A DNA stretch of 63,976 bases, the filler included, from Lenisia limosa (Eukaryota > Protista > Breviatea): the NCBI GenBank assembly GCA_001655205.1. It is 17 parts of 17 records of this genome, joined end to end, with 100 filler letters (N's around TTAATTAATTAA, not from the genome) between each part and the next. Parts side by side here need not be neighbours in the genome. Positions count along the whole stretch, not along the records: positions 3,766 to 9,438 come from LPNZ01009506.1; 16 more parts are not named here. One strand, given 5' to 3'. The notes beneath the pieces are model-generated. The model had not been told where the DNA came from. It ran no database searches and was given only the letters and a program-made list of their open reading frames with translations. Positions 74 to 9,438 of this stretch are shown one piece after another. The position numbers and the translations under genes were made by a program. The number at the start of each line of letters is the position of its first letter. Position 1 is the stretch's first letter.

Positions 74-1559
74 CGGAATCGCTTCCACTGTCCGATGACG
101 ATGAAGGTGATGCTGACCGTGAGCGTGTCCGTGAGCGATCTGATACTTGTTACGGGTAATAGATAATGATATGCGTTGGGATGGGGGTATCATTTGGGAA
201 AATTTATGAAACAAAAAAGCCCAAAATCAACTCTGTTGGCAACAGAAGACGTAAAACGAAGGAGATTTTGAGGGGGGGGGGGGTAATAGTTGTTAACGAT
301 AAAGTTAGTGGCAACAGTTCTGAAAGGAGTTCACCACAACATGTCCCATTTAAAATTGAAAGCTCTCGTTACTGTCTCGAGAATTCAGTCTTTTTTGGAA
401 CCAAAAGTGAAGCCCTAAAAGATACTCACCTTTCTCAGGGGTCCGGCTGCGGGATCTTCTTTCACGTAGAGGAGTCCTGTGGGGTAAAACAAAATAACAA
501 AAATAAAAAAGGAATGCTCGAAAAATAATAAAAAAACAAGAAGGTGGGAGGGTTTGGGAAACATATTATATGAATAATAAACAAGTCTTGCCATTTCAAC
601 CTCCTCATCCTGAGCACTTTTAACATCATGCTTACACTGACCGCGATAAGTCCTTATACTGACATTGAGCTTTAACTTTAGTCAATCATATCAGTACTTA
701 TCGCGGCCAATAAACATATTAATAAAAAGCCTTGGAGTGCCCACCTTCGTCTTGGCGATCTTGAGCGTCTACGGGGTGATCTTGAGTTTCTTCTGGGTGA
801 TCTTGAGTATCTTCTAGGCGATCTAGATGATCGTCTCCGAGGGGACCGGGATCTTCTAAGAGGTGAACTGGATGATCTTCTTCTGGGTGATCTTGAACGC
901 CGGGGCGAGGACCTTCTTCTTGGAGAGCGGGATCGTCTTTTGGGCGATTTGGAATATCTTCTTCTTGGTGATCTGGATGATCTTCTTGGCGATCTGGATG
1001 ATCTTCTTGGCGATCTGGATGATCTTCTTGGGGACCTGAGTTGTTTGAGAAAATGACAAGTCATTCATTTACCTAACAAACTAATGTGATTAGAACTATA
1101 TGATATAGAGATGAGAAATAAAATAAGGTTGTATCAGACCAAAGCCGTTCACACCATCACTCGTATTAAAGATTACATACTATAATAATGGATTTTTTCT
1201 ACGTCGTAGCTATCTTCTACCTTCGTATACACGAATGCTATTGGTCTTTATACATACTGAATACCGTATACATGTACAGTCTAGGGCTTCACTTTCGGTT
1301 CCAAAAAAAACTGAATTCTCGATAAATCCTCGAAAAATATCGATATTTTACAGGTGTTTCGGAACCGAAAGTGAAGCTCTAATAATACATACACTATGTA
1401 TTATAACATATACATGTATTATAACATGTTGTTACTGGTGAAAATCCAAGCATAATTAAAAAAACACAACGCTATTATTCATTCACTACTCTAACTCTTC
1501 ACTGTTCTAAAACAAACCTTGAATAATGGCGGCTCCCTCTTCCACGTCTCTCCGGAGCC
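74..1559 (-). CDS. SR/RS-repeat protein (splicing-factor-like low-complexity region), partial, >=4 exons
   Basis: Exons 1518-1559 (APERRGRGSRHYSR), ~745-1036 (RSPRRSS repeats), ~430-478 (RTPLRERRSRSRTPEK) and 74-139 (DRSRTRSRSASPSSSS) join in frame through GT-AG introns. No RRM is visible and the gene is truncated at both ends. Confidence 0.72.
1111..1185 (-). repeat. Dispersed repeat family C (atgagaaataaaataaggttgtatctggccgaagccgtccacaccatcac...)
   Basis: Matches copies at ~14206, 15208, 16408, 17061, 27830, 30592, 42850, 45258 and 46242. Confidence 0.75.
1283..1380. mobile_element. MITE family B (~95 bp, TIR AGGGCTTCACTTTCGGTTCC), intronic
   Basis: Left agggcttcactttcggttcc and right ggaaccgaaagtgaagctct are inverted repeats. 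The copy reads TA|GGG...CTC|TA. The same element recurs ~20 times in the window. Confidence 0.85.
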
Positions 1560-1632
1560 CTAAAATGTCAAAAAAACCAAATACTGGGGGTTTGAGATTA
1601 AGACAATAAGCATGAGAGCGGAGGATAATAAT

Positions 1633-2066
1633 AGGAAAACAGTATGCATGAGAGTAGAGAGGAAAACAGTATGCATTAGAGTAGAGGAAAACAGTATGCA
1701 TGAAAGTAGAGAGGAAAACAAAACAGTATGCATGAGAGTAGAGAGGAAAACAGTATGCATGAGAGTAGAGGAAAACAGGAAAACAGTATGCATGAGAGTA
1801 GAGGAAAACAGTATGCATAAGAGTAGAGAGGAAAATAATATGCATAAGAGTAGAGGAAAACAGTATGCATAAGAGTAGAGGAAAACAGTATGCATGAGAG
1901 TAGAGAGGAAAACAGTATGCATAAGAGTAGAGGAAAACAGTATGCATGAAAGTAGAGAGGAAAACAAAACAGAATGCATGAGAGTAGAGAGGAAAACAGT
2001 ATGCATGGAAAACAGTATGCATAAGAGTAGAGAGGAAAACAGTATGCATGAGAGTAGAGGAAAACA
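1633..2066. repeat. Intronic minisatellite, 25-27 bp unit GAGGAAAACAGTATGCAT(G/A)AGAGTA(GA), roughly 16 copies, runs into a gap
   Basis: Directly visible tandem array. It explains the repetitive ORFs called in several frames. Confidence 0.95.
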
Positions 2067-2110
2067 NNNNNNNNNNNNNNNNNNNNNNNNNNNNNNNNNN
2101 NNNNNNNNNN

Positions 2111-2122
2111 TTAATTAATTAA
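2111..2122. other. Artificial contig linker N-TTAATTAATTAA-N (six-frame stop spacer), first of 16
   Basis: An identical 12-mer centred in ~100-nt N blocks at 2111, 3710, 9483, 10674, 12351, 16836, 19658, 25551, 27026, 28132, 31300, 41391, 46186, 48760, 60903 and 62121. Confidence 0.97.
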
Positions 2123-2166
2123 NNNNNNNNNNNNNNNNNNNNNNNNNNNNNNNNNNNNNNNNNNNN

Positions 2167-3665
2167 AAGTTCGCAAATCCAAAGGCTGAGTCACTTGCGA
2201 GGTGTGTGAGGGTAGAAGGTAAAGGTAAATGTGATGATGCAGAAGGTACTCCAGTGACAAGGCCATAAGGCGAGATACATGTCCGTCAGTGATGAGTGCG
2301 GCAGCGGCATCCGGTGGCAGGTTGAGCTGACGGCGCTTGGCCTCAACTGCAGGGACGAAGTAGTCATGTACCCAGGTACAGAATGATTCGCAAGTCTGAA
2401 TTATGAAATGCAGCCCCGGTAATATTTTCCAATAATAATCACTCACTTGCCATCCATTTGGTGATTCGATGACCTTCGCGGAGTTGGTGTCGAGAATCGT
2501 CTTCTCAGACGAAACAGTCTTTTGGCCAAGCAAAAAGACAGGAGGAACCCTCGCATCATCGATAACAGTAGAATGAGAGCTAAACGTGTAACAATGGGAT
2601 GGATATTTAGAACCTCAACATTGGTATAGCTTACCCAATTGTGCCAATCAAAGTGATGTGGTTGGGAGGTGTAGCTGCTTTGGCGTAGGTTTTAGTTGCT
2701 TCAGCAAGAGTGATTACCTTGGTAGATGTTTCACTGGATACGTCAACCATACTCTCATCCATATTCCAGATCAATGAGGCGTTGATTTCAAGTTCATCAA
2801 TGGTTTTGCTCAGTGCATTCACGTGTTGCATCAGCCGCTCGGGAGTCAAAGCCTGTTCTCTTGACTTATCGAGTCGATTGGGGGTCTGTAATAAGTGAGA
2901 CAGCACACTTAGTATATGATTATAATTTATCCAAACATAATTTCCCAGCATACCACCACCTTAAAAACATCAGAATACTTGTCCATGAATGTCTTCAACC
3001 ATTGTTTAGTCGGAGGTGCGTCAGGAGGATCGGCAGAGTGTGTCTTGCAAATGTCAAAAACCTACAAGTTGTCATTCACCATATCTTAAATAATGAGGTT
3101 CATTTAACAATAAACCCTACCAGTTCACGGGTCTCTTTCATTGACAAGCTTTCGCCTCTCACAATGGATGAGGTGATATCTCGCAACACCATCTCAATGA
3201 GGTCAGGGTGCACATAAGGTTGCCCCCCATGCTTCTTGCGGATTCCAGTGTCCTTGTATTTTCTTATTTGCTTGCGACTGACCTGAAACCATTAAGATCG
3301 GACATGCTGGGGTTTTCTTATATCCTATTACAATGTACCTTGAGGAGAAAAGCGGCCGTTCTTTGACTAAGGTCTGAGTTAGTCACTCTTGCAAGGTGAA
3401 AGAGGGAACATATCTGTTCTTCAATTGCCATTTTGTAGAAACCCTCATTATGTCGGATTTCAATGCGAAGAGCTTCAAGTTTATGGCAGTCCTGTAATTG
3501 TAAAAATATCTACAGAGGTATAATAAAAACTAAACAGTACCCACATAATATTTGTATGGGACAAGAAGTAGCACATTACCTTTTGGGGAAGGAGATCAAA
3601 TCTATGAATTCCAACTCTATCGGCCATAATTGATGAATCGGATTCGTCGTTACAACTATATTAGT
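2167..3665 (-). mobile_element. pogo/Tigger/Fot1-like transposase (CENP-B-type HTH + DDE_1), intron-containing, truncated by contig ends
   Basis: Spliced protein has ...PTKQWLKTFMDKYS (HTH_Tnp_Tc5-like), IWNMDES, NGWQ|TCESFCTWVHDYF, LITDGHVSR and LYLLPSHTSQVTQPLD, which are DDE_1 catalytic motifs. Six GT-AG introns splice in frame with no stops (e.g. 2396-2446, 2580-2634). Confidence 0.85.
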
Positions 3666-3933
3666 NNNNNNNNNNNNNNNNNNNNNNNNNNNNNNNNNNN
3701 NNNNNNNNNTTAATTAATTAANNNNNNNNNNNNNNNNNNNNNNNNNNNNNNNNNNNNNNNNNNNNGAAACTGTATCACACCAAAAAAGGGGGTAAATGGG
3801 ATGAATAAAGACTGAAGAATTTAGTGTATTTGATCACCATTTGAGAAAAAAAAGCAAAACATTTACGAGTGTGAGCGATAACGGTATCAACTACCCTTCA
3901 CAGGCCAAATCCAATAGGTATTTAAGGGCAAAC

Positions 3934-6900
3934 CTGGGGAGACGTTACATTGGCAGGACCAGGAATACCATCATTGTCGATGTCGTTGAAGTNNNNNNNN
4001 NNNNNNNNNNNNNNNNNNNNNNNNNNNNNNNNNNNNNNNNNNNNNNNNNNNNNNNNNNNNNNNNNNNNNNNNNNNNNNNNNNNNNACACCTGAGATTGGT
4101 GTGTGCATCTAATGTAGTAAATAATAGGAATTTGTGTTGGCGCTGGAAGATTGTGATGCGACTGGTATAATCAATTGTATAGCTTTGGTGTACCCGAAAT
4201 GATAAACATAGCCCATCTTGTATCACAGGTGTCACCAAGGCCCCATAATAATTATAAACATACTATGCATACTTTTTTTTATTATTATTATTATATGATA
4301 TTAAAATATGTATACTATCATATATCATATGACATGCAAATATATTATATACTACTACATCAACTCCCGCCTTGTACATCAACTCCCACCTTGTTATCAC
4401 AGCTGTCACCGATGCCATCCCCGTCGAGGTCACTTGCCTCAAGGCCGTCTTTCACTCCACACAGATCGAAACACTCAATCCCGTCTCCTTTGTAGGGGGC
4501 TGCGGGGGGTAAGCGATTGGGGATAAGTAAGAGATTGTAGAGCAAGGAAATCGTTTTGAAGCGAGAAAACACAGCATAGATAAACAAAGCATATGGCTAG
4601 GTAAACATGGAATACATAGAGATAAACAAGGCATATCTGATACTATTACGATAAACAGAGCATAGTATTAACGACCCACAGTCGCATTCGCAGTAATGTC
4701 CGCCCGGGGTGTTGTGACACGTTGCATTGACCGCACATCCTCCATGGTTGATCTGGGGAGGGGGNNNNNNNNNNNNNNNNNNAAAACCCAAAATCAACTC
4801 TGTTGGCTGATAACACGTGACGGTTAATAACAACAAAACAAACAAAGCCCATGCCAGTCGCTTCTACAGCCGTTATTATCGTACTTCTGGTTATATAATC
4901 TCACGGATACGGGATTAACGCTACCCCCCCCCCATACATCACATTCATTGATGTCCTTGCAGGTGGTGTTGGCGGGCACTGACGGGTCCAATTCATAGCC
5001 CTCCGCACAGATACAATGGAAAGATGCGACTGGGGGAGAGGGGGTAAGATGGAAATTTATAGCTAAAAAGAGTCCAAAATCAACTATGTTGCTGACAACA
5101 CACGACGGTTGAAAATAAACAAAGCCCAAACCAGACGCTTCTGCAGCGCCGCATCCCATAATTCCAGCGGGGGAAACAATTGGATGACTAGCCCCACCCT
5201 CACCATCATTAACGCAAATAGCCTGAGAATCTAGGTCACAAGTGTGCATGAACTCAGGCTTTACAGTGGTGCACTCGTCAATATCAACACAATCTCTCTG
5301 ATTATCCACAAGCTCGTAGCCCGGATCGCAGGAACAAACGAAGCCGATTGTTGGGTGGTCAGGGTTGTCAAGCTCGTTCGGACATGACGTGTCACCGGGG
5401 AGGGGGACGCAGTTCTGGTAGGAGTAAAATTGGAAAATGAAACAAAAAAAAAACCCTCAACTCTTTTGGCTGCCAACACACGACGGTTGATAACAACANN
5501 NNNNNNNNNNNNNNNNNNNNNNNNNNNNNNNNNNNNNNNNNNNNNNNNNNNNNNNNNNNNNNNNNNNNNNNNNNNNNNNNNNNNNNNNNNNNNNNNNNNN
5601 NNNNNNNNNNNNNNNNNNNNNNNNNNNNNNNNNNNNNNNNNNNNNNNNNNNNNNNNNNNNNNNNNNNNNNNNNNNNNNNNNNNNNNNNNNNNNNNNNNNN
5701 NNNNNNNNNNNNNATATTGAATTATAGTATTTGCCTGACTACAACTCTGCAAACATAATATAATATACTATGATATAAACTAGTATGTATGAACATCACT
5801 TCTATCCAATAACATCACCACCCACTGTGCACTGATGGTGACAGGTTCCAAGCCCGTCATTAAAGGCACAGTTGTCAATGTCCTCGCAGGTGAAGCCGTC
5901 TCCTGTGTATCCCTGGGGGGGGGGGGNNNNNNNNNNNNNNNNNNNNNNNNNNNNNNNNNNNNNNNNNNNNNNNNNNNNNNNNNNNNNNNNNNNNNNNNNN
6001 NNNNNNNNNNNNNNNNNNNNNNNNNNNNNNNNNNNNNNNNNNNNNNNNNNNNNNNNNNNNNNNNNNNTTTTGAATAAAGACAATAGCACAGCTACAATAC
6101 CAATATTTCCAAAGAGAGAAATGACCAACAACATAATAAATAATCCTACCTGGGGGCACGGTGCGCAGTCGAAATGCCCTCCGCAGGGGTAGTTCCAACA
6201 CTCCAGGCTGGTGGGGTGAAGGGAAACTTTAAACAACTCACAATCTTGTGGGTAAAAAGTGAGGAACATGGAAAGAAATAACAACATAAAGCAAAACAAG
6301 GATAGTGGTGGATATGAGCTAGAACCAGCGATTCCCTCGTCGATAATTTATCTGTCTTAGAGAAGCTCTGGATATAACGAAGATAATTTTGGAGTTGAAG
6401 ACTTGATGATACAAAATGGCAGTAGCAGCAATTGCACTTTTACAAACAAGGAGCCACATACAAGCAAGGGTTGGGGTCACAATAGTCAATATCGACACAA
6501 TGGTTGGTGGAGTTCATTTCCATATGTTCAGGACAAGAACAAGAAAACATAGGCACGAGGTCGGAGCAAATCACTGAGGTGTTGGTACATTGTGAGATAG
6601 CATTGCAGTCGTGAGTACCCGTGGAACACTCGTCAATGTTCTGGGGGGNNNNNNNNNNNNNNNNNNNNNNNNNNNNNNNNNNNNNNNNNNNNNNNNNNNN
6701 NNNNNNNNNNNNNNNNNNNNNNNNNNNNNNNNNNNNNNNNNNNNNNNNNNNNNNNNNNNNNNNNNNNNNNNNNCAAACACGAGCAACCAACGCTAGACAA
6801 AAACTAGATGACAAAAATACAAAAACTCAGTATATTACCACTACTGTCTACACGTTGCCCAAAAAGCAAGAGGGGAGGAGAAGCAAAATTGGCATACCAG

Positions 6901-9438
6901 GCATTCAGTGAGATCAGTCAGCTCATAACCCTCGTCACATGTGCAGTAGAAGCTGCCAGGCGTGTTGTGGCTAAATTTGTCAATGTTGAAAGTCTCATTA
7001 AATCCTCTCTAAATATTGCTATTTTGACAATCTTTTTTGGACCATAGGGAAGCCTTAATTATTGGTCTTTATCATTTGCCTAGACTAATACGTAACAAGA
7101 ATAGGGGTCCACCAACAGAGTTTTGCTTAATTTCAGAAAAAGACTGAATTTCTCGATAAAACTGCGAAAACAATCGATACTTTACTAGTCTTTACGGGTA
7201 CAAAGTTGAAACCCTTCCAACCAGTTGTGTGGCTGACTGCACTTATTAGCGCCAATGGGGTCAAGTTCGCACTCGTCAATGTCCGTACTGGGGGGGGGGG
7301 GGGNNNNNNNNNNNNNNNNNNNNNNNNNNNNNNNNNNNNNNNNNNNNNNNNNNNNNNNNNNNNNNNNNNNNNNNNNNNNNNNNNNNNNNNNNNNNNNNNN
7401 NNNNNAAAGTTGCAACTCCAAGTGGAACAAACTCTCCTCAGCAGTATACCCCCCCACCAGGTAGCGGTGTAAGAGTCGCCAACGTATCCCTCGGGACACG
7501 GCGGGCAAATATACGACCCAATTAAGTTCTCGCAGACAACCTGGGGGTGGGGGTGACATAACTAAGAAGGAAACGCATAAAATCAATAAAATATACAACA
7601 GTAAGCAGAATGTCAGCAGAAGATCCAATACTCAGTAGAAGATCCAAGACTCAGCAGAGTATATTAAATAGTCGTCCCCCTTACCAGAGCGTCACATCCA
7701 CCATTATCTGTTTGTGTGCACTCGTTGATGTCTTTACAGGCGGTTTTACCTATAAGATCAGAGAGCTTCCTATTTGGATAAAAATATTGCATCAATTCGA
7801 ATACGATATATTTTCATTTTGATCCAAAACAACCCATTCCCATTCCCGCAGTTTCATACTATTATTTCAAATAGTCCCCGTAATGATCTGAAAAGTGACG
7901 TGCAGAGGAGGTACTTGATATTAATCTCTCAAAGTTTTCACAAATAAGTTTACAGACTACAAAAGAAGTGAAATGTGGTGTAAGGGAAAGTACGTCGCCG
8001 CAGTTCTGATGATGCTGTTTAGGCTGTGGTAGGAGGATGATGATGCTGTGTAAGCCACCATCCCTACCCGATGATATTAAATTCCCCAAAGATTCACCTC
8101 CATTCCCATTGCCAAAGATTCATACCCGTTCCAGAGTAGCCGTCAGGACAGGGTGAGCACTCGAAGGAGCCTGCAGTATTGGTGCAGTTGGTCAGAACGT
8201 CACAGGGGTCCAGTAAACACTCGTCGTCGTCTGGAGGGTGAGGTTTGGGATACGATGTGGGATTATGTATGGGGAGGGCGGGTAAAACTGATTTATCTAC
8301 TTCCCAGCCCATACCAATATGTGATATGCATACCGATACAGGTGAACAGGTCGGGTTGCAAGGTGAATCCACTATTGCATTCACAGGAGAAAGTTCCGGG
8401 GGAGTTCACACAGACCTACAGACGTTATCATTCTTCATAATGTATAATATAGAGAGATGTATCAAGTCATTATTTGCGTCTTATTCTGTTTTTTCTTTGC
8501 TTTGTTGTTCTCAGCCCTTGTGTGTTGCTTGCCAACAGAGTTGATTTTGGGCTTTTTTTGTCTCATGAATTTTACAATTTTACGTCCTCTCCCCTCCCCC
8601 TTGTTTTGTTCCATAATTCCGCCCACCTGGTCACAGATATTGAGAGCCTCATCGGCACACTCATCGATATCGACACACGAGTCCTTATCCAAGGGGTCGA
8701 CTGAATAGCCCTCGTGACAGGAGCAGATGTAACTTCCGGGTGTATTCTCACATATCTAAGGGGGGGGGGGNNNNNNNNNNNNNNNNNNNNNNNNNNNNNN
8801 NNNNNNNNNNNNNNNNNNNNNNNNNNNNNNNNAACCAAATAATCTGAAACTCCAAACACAAAACAAAACAAAAAAACACACAGTCATATTTATGAGGGTG
8901 CTCATTTGATGTGAAATTGCAGGGGTGATGGTTCATAATACTTTAAATATGATAATCTTCGACAGTCCCCCCTCCCACTTGTCTGCAGGGAACTTCAAGT
9001 ATGCATTCATCACGTTCGATACAGATGGACCCGTCGCCGTCGTAACCCGAGGGGCATGGCGAGCATGTTCCTGACGACGTGGTGTACATGAAGGATAACT
9101 CTTGGATTGCTGATAGTCTGGGGGGGGGGGGNNNNNNNNNNNNNNNNNNNNNNNNNNNNNNNNNNNNNNNNNNNNNNNNNNNNNNNNACAAATCAGTTGG
9201 CTGACAACACACAAGGGCTAATAACAACAAAACAAAACCAGTCAAATTGGTAAATTTTGAAAATCAAGGTCCAAAATCTACTCTTCTCTAAAAAAACAAC
9301 TCGATTGACTATAAAATTGAGAGAGTGCTCGGTAGGTTTAGCCAGACCCACGAGTTAGTAACACCGACGAGGGCATTTGGAGAGAACGGTGCCATTGAGG
9401 TCAGTTTGAGGCCTTCTCCCAGTGAGCCGGCAGGGGCT
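3934..9438 (-). CDS. Large extracellular protein with many Ca-binding EGF repeats followed by thrombospondin type-3-like Asp-rich repeats, partial
   Basis: Spliced exons give repeated DIDEC/DINEC...C..N...G.(Y/F).C.C..GY units, e.g. DINECD|[23 protein letters not shown] and [35 protein letters not shown]. Exon 4390-4499 has [13 protein letters not shown] and exon 3934-3992 has NDIDNDGIP. Confidence 0.87.
4753..4872 (-). mobile_element. Family A repeat ending at 3' splice acceptor (intron 4753-4937)
   Basis: Minus strand: ...gcgactggcatgggctttgtttgttttgttgtt...gccaacagagttgattttgggtttt[N]ccccctccccAG|atcaaccat (exon INHGG). Confidence 0.8.
5030..5169 (-). mobile_element. Family A repeat, near full length, ending at acceptor (intron 5030-5203)
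   Basis: gctggaattatgggatgcggcgctgcagaagcg...taaatttccatcttaccccctctcccccAG|tcgcatct; the exons join in frame as D-V-A-S-F-H-C. Confidence 0.85.
5415..5498 (-). mobile_element. Family A repeat ending at acceptor
   Basis: ...ttttccaattttactcctaccAG|aactgcgtc (exon NCVPLPG). Confidence 0.8.
8495..8601 (+). mobile_element. Family A repeat, antisense to host gene, G-rich end close to the donor
   Basis: Plus strand gccaacagagttgattttgggc...ttttacgtcctctcccctccccc inside a minus-strand EGF-gene intron whose donor lies ~25 nt from the run. Confidence 0.8.
9118..9245 (-). mobile_element. Family A repeat ending at acceptor (centre in gap)
   Basis: C-run+AG at 9118; the element body (ttggctgacaacacacaagggctaataacaacaaaacaaa) resumes after the N gap. 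Confidence 0.7.

Follow-up and report, generated by a model that had tools for sequence, protein, structure and literature searches.

In this work, we ask why, in many introns of the breviate Lenisia limosa, the initial GT is followed by a G-run and the final AG is preceded by a C-run. The question was raised by a window of 63,976 nucleotides (nt), filler included, which joins 17 parts of the genome assembly GCA_001655205.1, and in particular by the part at window positions 3766-9438. This piece is contig C9506 (LPNZ01009506.1) of an assembly of 49.0 Mb in 11,727 contigs, and it carries a minus-strand gene with EGF repeats. A sequence-only reading of the window had pointed to the intron at 7288-7456, in which the G-run at the donor and the C-run at the acceptor are near reverse complements, and had offered three explanations: terminal inverted repeats of an intron-generating DNA element, an RNA zipper that brings distant splice sites together, or a separate pair of splicing signals. 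We propose that two separate features would meet at these intron ends, namely the C-rich tail of a short repeat, here called family A, at the 3' end and a G-tract at the 5' end. From the sequence evidence set out below, we consider the chances of this explanation to be about even.

The splice sites were placed from genomic sequence alone, via a predicted exon model of the EGF-repeat gene (4390..9117, minus strand). The model contains 15 exons by coordinates (E1-E5 at 9117-8979, 8755-8627, 8415-8334, 8230-8126, and 7749-7685; E6-E10 at 7540-7458, 7287-7222, 6970-6898, 6640-6462, and 6207-6150; E11-E15 at 5912-5826, 5414-5204, 5029-4938, 4752-4680, and 4499-4390) and 14 introns, every one of which is GT-AG. 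The joined exons give 517 codons with no stop in one frame, compared with 50 and 10 stops in the other two frames; this single open frame fixes the splice sites. Pfam searches with single exons matched cEGF (E = 4e-9 and 5e-9) and EGF_CA (E = 2e-7), and six-cysteine modules starting D-x-D/N-E-C are visible in the exon translations. Judged from these matches, the host gene encodes a calcium-binding EGF repeat protein (cEGF / EGF_CA). The last exon (36 amino acids) presumably resembles a thrombospondin type-3 repeat; a Pfam search with this exon gave no match. The introns of the host gene were found at homologous positions of successive EGF modules.

Of the 22 runs of G or C in the piece (at least five bases), 15 were located no more than 15 nt from a splice site, where 9% would be expected (binomial p = 2e-11). 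Relative to the gene strand, the polarity of all 15 splice-proximal runs was strict: those at donors consisted of G and those at acceptors of C. The G-run donors and C-run acceptors described in the sequence-only reading are thus real, and they include the GTGGGAGGGGGG donor at 8978, the GTATG10 donor at 4937, and the acceptors at 4500, 5030, and 7541, in which TTAC or TCAC is followed by a C-run and AG. Genome-wide, with the words of both strands pooled, C8+AG was counted at 2,351 sites and GT+G8 at 2,988 sites, and the word GTGGGAGGGGG was counted at 560 sites compared with 214 for the reversed word. Beyond such counts, 163 kb of non-redundant sequence was read, part of which had been picked for family A or GTGGGAGGGGG. 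In this sample, C-runs of at least seven bases followed by AG or by AC, the complement of a GT donor, were far above the expectation from base composition.

Both kinds of run were present in one intron, as had been noted, at 4937..4753, 5203..5030, and 7457..7288, and they were found together in 8978..8756 and 7684..7541 as well, all on the minus strand. The gap-free intron I12 (5030..5203) has the donor GTGAGGGTGGGG, a sense copy of family A at about 5030-5169, and the acceptor TTACCCCCTCTCCCCCAG. The intron I13 (4753..4937) combines its GTATG10 donor with a sense family A copy and the acceptor CCCCCTCCCCAG, and contains an 18-N gap. The GTGGGAGGGGGG donor of intron I1 (8756..8978) is accompanied by a C11+TTAG acceptor and a 62-N gap, and the interior at 8833-8876 matches a repeat related to a variant named family C. 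The intron I5 (7541..7684) is gap-free, with the donor GTAAGGGGG and the acceptor TCACCCCCACCCCCAG, and no interspersed repeat was detected in it. An internal direct repeat, CTGAGTNTTGGATCTTCT, occurs twice in I5, and another, TGCYYTGTTTATC, occurs three times in intron I14 (4500-4679); both are unrelated to the known repeat families.

The fifth of these introns, I6 (7288..7457, minus strand), is the one that was originally flagged, and its nominal 170 nt include an assembly gap of 102 N (7304..7405). The donor GT lies at 7457/7456 and is followed by G7, which corresponds to the plus-strand C-run 7449-7455. The acceptor AG lies at 7289/7288 and is preceded by at least 14 C, which correspond to the plus-strand G-run 7290-7303, cut by the gap that begins right after this homopolymer. 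Behind the gap, the C-run may be longer than these 14 bases, and some 100 nt of the interior are missing. It is wholly within the intron, so the reading frame across it is irrelevant, and since the consecutive EGF pieces E6 (7540-7458) and E7 (7287-7222) fit the 15-exon frame, the sequences on either side of the gap belong directly together in one gene. Of the intron interior, 51 bases are resolved, and these matched no repeat in the 163-kb sample.

Seven of the nine gaps within the piece start directly after a G or C run (e.g., 4765, 5927, 6649, 7304, 8771, and 9132), and the run lengths are therefore lower bounds. At the sampled loci, every gap-adjacent run was on the left edge of its gap, G and C alike. 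Furthermore, the order of unique sequence and then run was 1.6-2 times commoner genome-wide than its reverse complement, again for G- and C-runs alike (CTG8 1,575 vs. C8AG 776; GTG8 1,833 vs. C8AC 1,155; CAC8 1,671 vs. G8TG 923). Roughly half of the long runs are not crossed by the assembly, whose contigs end there. Because the runs are placed to the left of gaps, the forward and reverse counts of one word differ up to two-fold, and strand-symmetric statistics are biased. The gap positions and the unequal counts would agree with homopolymers that arose from failed base calling or gap closing, but such an origin is scarcely credible, as the start of the runs coincides precisely with frame-validated splice sites, their G/C polarity is strict, and many of them are fully traversed with unique sequence on both sides (e.g., C10 at 4924-4933 and C7 at 7449-7455). 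A dark-cycle artefact, which would produce poly-G only, was ruled out because C-runs behave like G-runs and both are found on left gap edges. The assembler effect is a placement bias and not a poly-G base-calling artefact.

At the 3' end of the introns, much of the evidence concerns family A. Alignment of 24 copies with their flanks gave a consensus of 146 nt that runs from GCTGGAGTGATGGGA to TTCCAATTTTAC and has a C-tract behind it; the homology stops on both sides. The 3' end of the family consists of TTTTAC and a purine-poor C-tract (module ...GATTTTGGGCTTTTTTGTTTCATAAATTTTCCAATTTTAC(C)n); the tail is 80% C with a median length of 7 nt. A query with the 174-nt intron returned more than 720 candidate matches, and a 12-mer of the 3' module was counted 1,449 times genome-wide compared with 6 for a control. 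As about one quarter of the aligned copies carry the exact 12-mer, this count corresponds to roughly 6,000 copies of family A. The 3' end was reached by 63 of 74 copies and the 5' end by 30 of 74, and a second class of copies begins near position 80. The simple 3' tail, the preserved 3' ends, and the variably missing 5' ends are those expected of a short interspersed nuclear element (SINE). The two ends of the aligned copies (GCTGGAGTG... and ...CCAATTTTAC) are not complementary, so inverted terminal repeats are absent from them. Searches of full-length copies for transfer RNA (ARAGORN) and in Rfam gave no match. A weak A-box-like GCTGGAGTGATGG could be made out only by eye. About six of the 24 copies have direct repeats rich in C on both sides (CCCCCGC in L010, TCCCCT in L008, ACCCCC in L023, and CCCCC in I12), and others lack them. 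Pyrimidine- or C-rich sequence is present just upstream of many copies, and tandem A-A arrays and junctions occur. The family C variant has a different body and a similar end, ...CATCGAAATTTCCTTCGTTTTAC and a C-run, and shares the 3' module of family A.

The tails of family A are closely associated with 3' splice sites. The first purine pair after the tail was AG in 34% of copies vs. 10% in the control, and about 35 of the 55 tails that were read by eye ran uninterrupted into YAG. In genes whose exons were fixed independently, all sense copies end at an acceptor: four of them in the window, one of which is behind a gap, and two in myosin genes (contigs C9437 and C9077). Apart from the copies in I12 and I13, these include a 3' part of family A at 5415..5498 (minus strand, sense), which ends TTTTACTCCTACCAG at the acceptor of intron I11, and a copy at 9188..9242 (minus strand, sense) in the intron upstream of E1, where a 56-N gap and then C12+AG (9118-9131) follow. 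The repeat spans only the 3' part of the validated introns, namely positions 35-174 of I12, 68-155 of I13, and 328-408 of I11. The only antisense copy in the window is located at 8492..8600 (plus strand, antisense to the gene) in intron I2; on the gene strand, its C-rich tail (8586-8600) forms a G-rich tract at a distance of 25 nt downstream from the donor. In the sample, 15 of 37 acceptor-type C-runs adjoined the 3' ends of family A or C, compared with 5 of 46 donor-type runs.

The G-runs at the 5' ends start at donor position +3 (GTGGG...) or +5 (GTATG..., GTAAG...), i.e., with the conserved donor G. The sequence inside the G-run was unique in 39 of the 46 donor-type runs, and family A was found beside only five of the 46. 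The genome copies of I12 align to its positions 35-174, and the first 34 nt, including the G-rich donor, are unmatched. The G-rich donor is thus outside the repeat. An altered U1 small nuclear RNA (snRNA) fitting the G-run donors was rejected because the 5' end of U1 is canonical (ACUUACCU). Nine U1 snRNA genes with an identical score of 69.6 bits and the 5' end AAACUUACCU were found (contigs C6437, C7580, C7678, C8279, C8595, C10933, C11617, C6443, and C9322). The idea that the inner end of the G-run holds another donor was rejected as well; when read by eye, +3 was a purine in 23 of 24 cases, but +5 was G in only 4 of 21.

Another repeat, family B, was considered as a carrier of the G-runs and rejected, as it is an independent, TA-flanked palindromic element at a variable distance from the donor. 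Two pieces of this Stowaway-like miniature transposon (7126-7196 and 6993-7062) lie inside intron I7. Family B has both terminal inverted repeats and a target-site duplication, as a miniature inverted-repeat transposable element does. It is about 110 nt long, abundant, and TA-flanked, with the termini GGGCTTCACTTCGGTTCGAAAAA..., and in many long introns it is located 10-60 nt from the G-run donor, unjoined to it. It was also seen in the loci L031, L035, L038, L039, L040, L056, and L058.

The ordinary introns of the genome were represented by 26 introns of myosin genes, which were chosen regardless of runs and classed by eye. Most of them are 28-68 nt long with ordinary ends. Of the 16 tiny myosin introns, 3 had a G-run donor, as did 2 of the 10 long ones. 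C-run acceptors were observed in long introns only: a C12 whose end is of the A/C type, and two others that are weak. The tiny introns have YTNAC 8-20 nt before the AG and no C-run acceptor. The earlier suggestion that the runs belong to long introns holds for the C-runs, but not for the G-runs, because tiny introns carry G-run donors too. The restriction of C-runs to long introns would follow if the insertion of a repeat both added length and introduced the run. The myosin intron with the C12 acceptor is at position ~379 of the hidden Markov model, and this position (~378-380) is common to four paralogues in this genome. Thus, the introns at shared positions in EGF modules and in the four myosin paralogues predate the repeats. 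Most introns in conserved genes (myosin and kinesin) measure ~28-68 nt, and their length distribution appears bimodal. Several Pfam matches read through tiny introns with in-frame stops (C5834:52577-52606 and C2344:13342-13381).

The G-run and the C-run could have been selected to pair, and so to join distant splice sites, perhaps bypassing U2AF where the tract is C-rich, for a spliceosome tuned to introns of 30-70 nt. Such an intron-bridging zipper seems unlikely to us, even though it has a precedent in the (AC)n/(GT)n bridged introns of fish and the co-occurrence of G and C triplets in human introns (Lin et al., 2016, PMC4691745). In the host gene, C-run acceptors were present in all five introns with a G-run donor vs. 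three of the nine others (Fisher p = 0.028). However, of 8 C-run acceptors, 5 had a G-run donor in their own intron, and for 2 of 7 the following intron had one; this difference is not significant (p = 0.31), so that clustering by gene explains the co-occurrence equally well. The minimum-energy folds of the two gap-free introns, I12 and I5, close with a stem between G-run and C-run, and the centroid structure keeps this stem in I12, but the fold energies are no better than those of shuffled sequences (z = -0.56 and -0.36). Among the five myosin introns with a G-run donor, at most one has an acceptor that is even C-rich, and that one is not a C-run. In the 163 kb, donor-like sites had an acceptor-like run within 600 nt downstream in 13 cases and upstream in 17. 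At a distance of 120-150 nt, G7..C7 (across an intron) was counted 337 times genome-wide vs. 836 times for C7..G7 (across an exon), as raw counts that are not normalised for exon and intron lengths. Covariation of the runs within an intron had been suggested as a check of pairing, and the interruptions of the runs do not covary (G3AG6 with C11, and G10 with C5TC4). The zipper is physically plausible from its predicted folds: runs sharing an intron may pair, but selection for such pairing is unsupported here. The order of adjacent runs was tried as a further statistic and rejected: with donors and acceptors alternating, the G-to-C and C-to-G counts come out equal whatever the model, so that the order carries no information. 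As a separate observation, the arrangement of a C-run followed by a G-run 120-150 nt away is 2.5 times commoner than the reverse, and complementary runs flanking exons in this way could in theory favour exon looping or back-splicing.

It has also been proposed that the runs are terminal inverted repeats, so that each intron would be one DNA transposon, GTGGGAGGGGG...CCCCCTCCC(AC)AG, creating an intron on insertion. The near reverse-complementary ends, the recurrence of GTGGGAGGGGG, the L022 acceptor CCCCCCTCCCACAG, which is the exact complement of the donor word plus AG, and the many transposon classes known to form introners (PMC12130899) would all fit such an element. Nevertheless, it is very improbable and was rejected: no target-site duplication was found at the five validated introns with both runs, the interiors beside the G-run are mutually unrelated, the first 34 nt of I12 are not repeated elsewhere whereas the rest of the intron is, there is no characteristic unit length from G-run to C-run, and the introns at homologous EGF-module and shared myosin positions are older than the repeats. 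A mobile element is involved all the same, though it is confined to the 3' end and belongs to a different type. If this retroelement system also supplied the donors, the runs at both ends would be its orphan tails, left by insertions that were primed from a C-tail, in sense at acceptors and antisense at donors, mostly 5'-truncated to the homopolymer and a few bases. In favour of this, the base pair inside the run is mirrored at the two ends (TA or CA before C-runs; TA in 16 of 24 and TG in 7 of 24 after G-runs), antisense family A directly follows the G-run donors of L046, L032, and L015 and is 25 nt from the donor in I2, the acceptors of I5 and I14 keep a short ...TCAC or ...TTAC remnant resembling the 3' module of families A and C, and there are the tandem A-A arrays. 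We regard this as quite unlikely nonetheless, since recognisable family A is found beside so few donor-type runs, the TAAAAT expected after the TA mostly does not follow, G-run donors are present in introns of 55-70 nt, and the exact placement after GT or before AG is left unexplained except by survivorship. A broader hypothesis can be assembled from these parts, in which a C-tailed retroelement homes to acceptor C-tracts and, in antisense, to donor G-tracts, lengthening the tracts in a self-reinforcing manner, and the G/C pair zips the enlarged intron, so that it could still be spliced by a machinery that is adapted to introns of 30-70 nt and whose U2AF prefers uridine. Such a transposon-driven, structure-assisted route from tiny to long introns is conceivable, but distinctly improbable in our estimation.

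The explanation by two separate features, which corresponds to the separate signal pair of the sequence-only reading, fits these results best, as either run occurs without the other and U1 is canonical. We hypothesize that roughly a fifth to a half of the 3' C-runs are the C-rich tail of family A as a SINE-like, non-autonomous family of about 146 nt. With the repeat in sense and the tail running straight into the AG, it would serve as the 3' splice signal of the lengthened intron. TTTTAC together with the tail reproduces the native layout of branch site and pyrimidine tract, because the tiny introns have their YTNAC at a similar place before the AG. The repeat was probably copied in from its tail by target-primed reverse transcription, and the C-tail may have primed on the G-rich complementary strand of a C/T tract, which would amount to homing into existing pyrimidine tracts. 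Such targeting would explain the sense copies at acceptors, the tandem A-A arrays, the C-rich upstream flanks, and the few antisense copies at G-run donors. At the 5' end, GT(GGGA)G5-or-more, GTATG5-or-more, and GTAAG5-or-more would be extensions of the +3 or +5 donor G into unique intron sequence. By analogy, these G-runs may be donor-proximal G-tract enhancers, or else tolerated expansions that are prone to slippage.

Several observations weigh against this explanation. The intron I5 is a clean case in which both runs are present without a recognisable mobile element. Of the 100 first-listed C8+AG sites, only three adjoin the exact 12-mer, which scales to ~13% with a wide error. Because the share was 15 of 37 in the sample and about 13% in this rough genome-wide estimate, family A accounts for a sizeable part of the C-run acceptors, not for all of them. 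The co-occurrence of the runs in the host gene (5/5 vs. 3/9) departs from a pure independence model, and the enhancer role of the G-runs is drawn from other organisms only. The SINE label is provisional, as neither an RNA polymerase III head nor a consistent target-site duplication was found, nor a partner among the long interspersed nuclear elements, at which no search was aimed. Moreover, 9 of 17 full-length copies are preceded by GT(A/G)(A/C), which would suit an element that is itself an intron. In L003, L013 (about 1490-1505), and L029, a full-length copy beginning GTACG stands right after a complete intron 3' end (...TCTAACCTCTGCAG|GTACGCTGGAG...). Judging by such copies, family A may itself be an intron. 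The AG|GT junction of these three loci is like a zero-length exon or a recursive splice site.

Apart from the introns, the locus L050 contains an open frame of 473 codons (794-2212, minus strand), which had no Pfam match and found only itself among 5.8 billion proteins. The lineage seems poorly sampled in protein collections.

If the proposed explanation is true, thousands of 3' splice sites in a compact genome of tiny introns are built from the tail of one short repeat. It would be a genome-scale case of a mobile element that supplies constitutive splice signals and does not disturb them. It would also offer a natural system for studying how a pyrimidine tract of C only is recognised, and whether the G-tracts at the donor help or pair, and it may show how tiny introns become long. 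The breakage of the assembly at intron ends would be explained as well. Since contigs end at roughly half of the long runs, this assembly biases the gene models and intron statistics derived from it, and gene finders trained on U-rich tracts will mis-call C-run acceptors.

No account of a short repeat with a C-tail that occupies thousands of acceptors in sense orientation was found in a literature search of incomplete coverage, although several known systems resemble parts of what was observed here. In teleosts, introns are bridged by (AC)n and (GT)n tracts, and in human introns G triplets near the 5' end co-occur with C triplets near the 3' end (Lin et al., 2016, PMC4691745). The introns of L. 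limosa are similar in having complementary simple tracts at opposite ends, G-rich at the 5' end and C-rich at the 3' end, which are predicted to pair. For the bridged introns, co-occurrence across introns and not across exons, stability above shuffled sequences, and independence from U2AF2 were all demonstrated (PMC4691745). Here, as far as the data allow, stability did not exceed that of shuffled sequences, and the co-occurrence seen in the host gene was not distinguishable from clustering by gene. The tracts, at 5 to more than 14 nt, are genuine homopolymers. Introners are transposons that generate introns (PMC12130899; 10.1101/2022.06.06.494994), and they are known to arise from many transposon classes, including retroposons without long terminal repeats (non-LTR) (PMC12130899). 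Family A is like them a high-copy family with splice-signal-like ends in introns of unrelated genes. Unlike introners, it gives only the 3' end in the validated cases, with the donors in unique sequence, and its host introns are at old shared positions with no target-site duplication doubling as a splice site. Family A is therefore not classed as an introner.

Among the non-LTR retrotransposons of the R1 clade, there are elements specific for simple repeats. In these elements, as in family A, the 3' tail matches the targeted simple repeat and tandem arrays result, whereas the targeting of C-tracts by family A is deduced from its flanks only. G triplets downstream of 5' splice sites act as intronic splicing enhancers in short vertebrate introns. 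Enhancers of this type are also mentioned by Lin et al. (PMC4691745). The G-tracts of L. limosa are comparable in that they lie within the first 10-40 nt of the intron, but they are single long homopolymers starting at donor +3 or +5. The poly(U) tracts of antisense Alu elements act as pyrimidine tracts of new 3' splice sites. In dogs, the Merle SINE is inserted at an intron/exon boundary, and the length of its tail is reported to govern splicing (PMC7349775). In these cases, a short retroposon has its homopolymer tail at a 3' splice site, where the tail acts as the pyrimidine tract or disturbs it, and the tail length is unstable, which resembles the situation at the C-run acceptors. The tail there is poly(A), read antisense as poly(U), and the outcome is exonisation or disease. 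The tail of family A, on the other hand, is C-rich, lies in sense, and appears to serve constitutive acceptors at thousands of introns.

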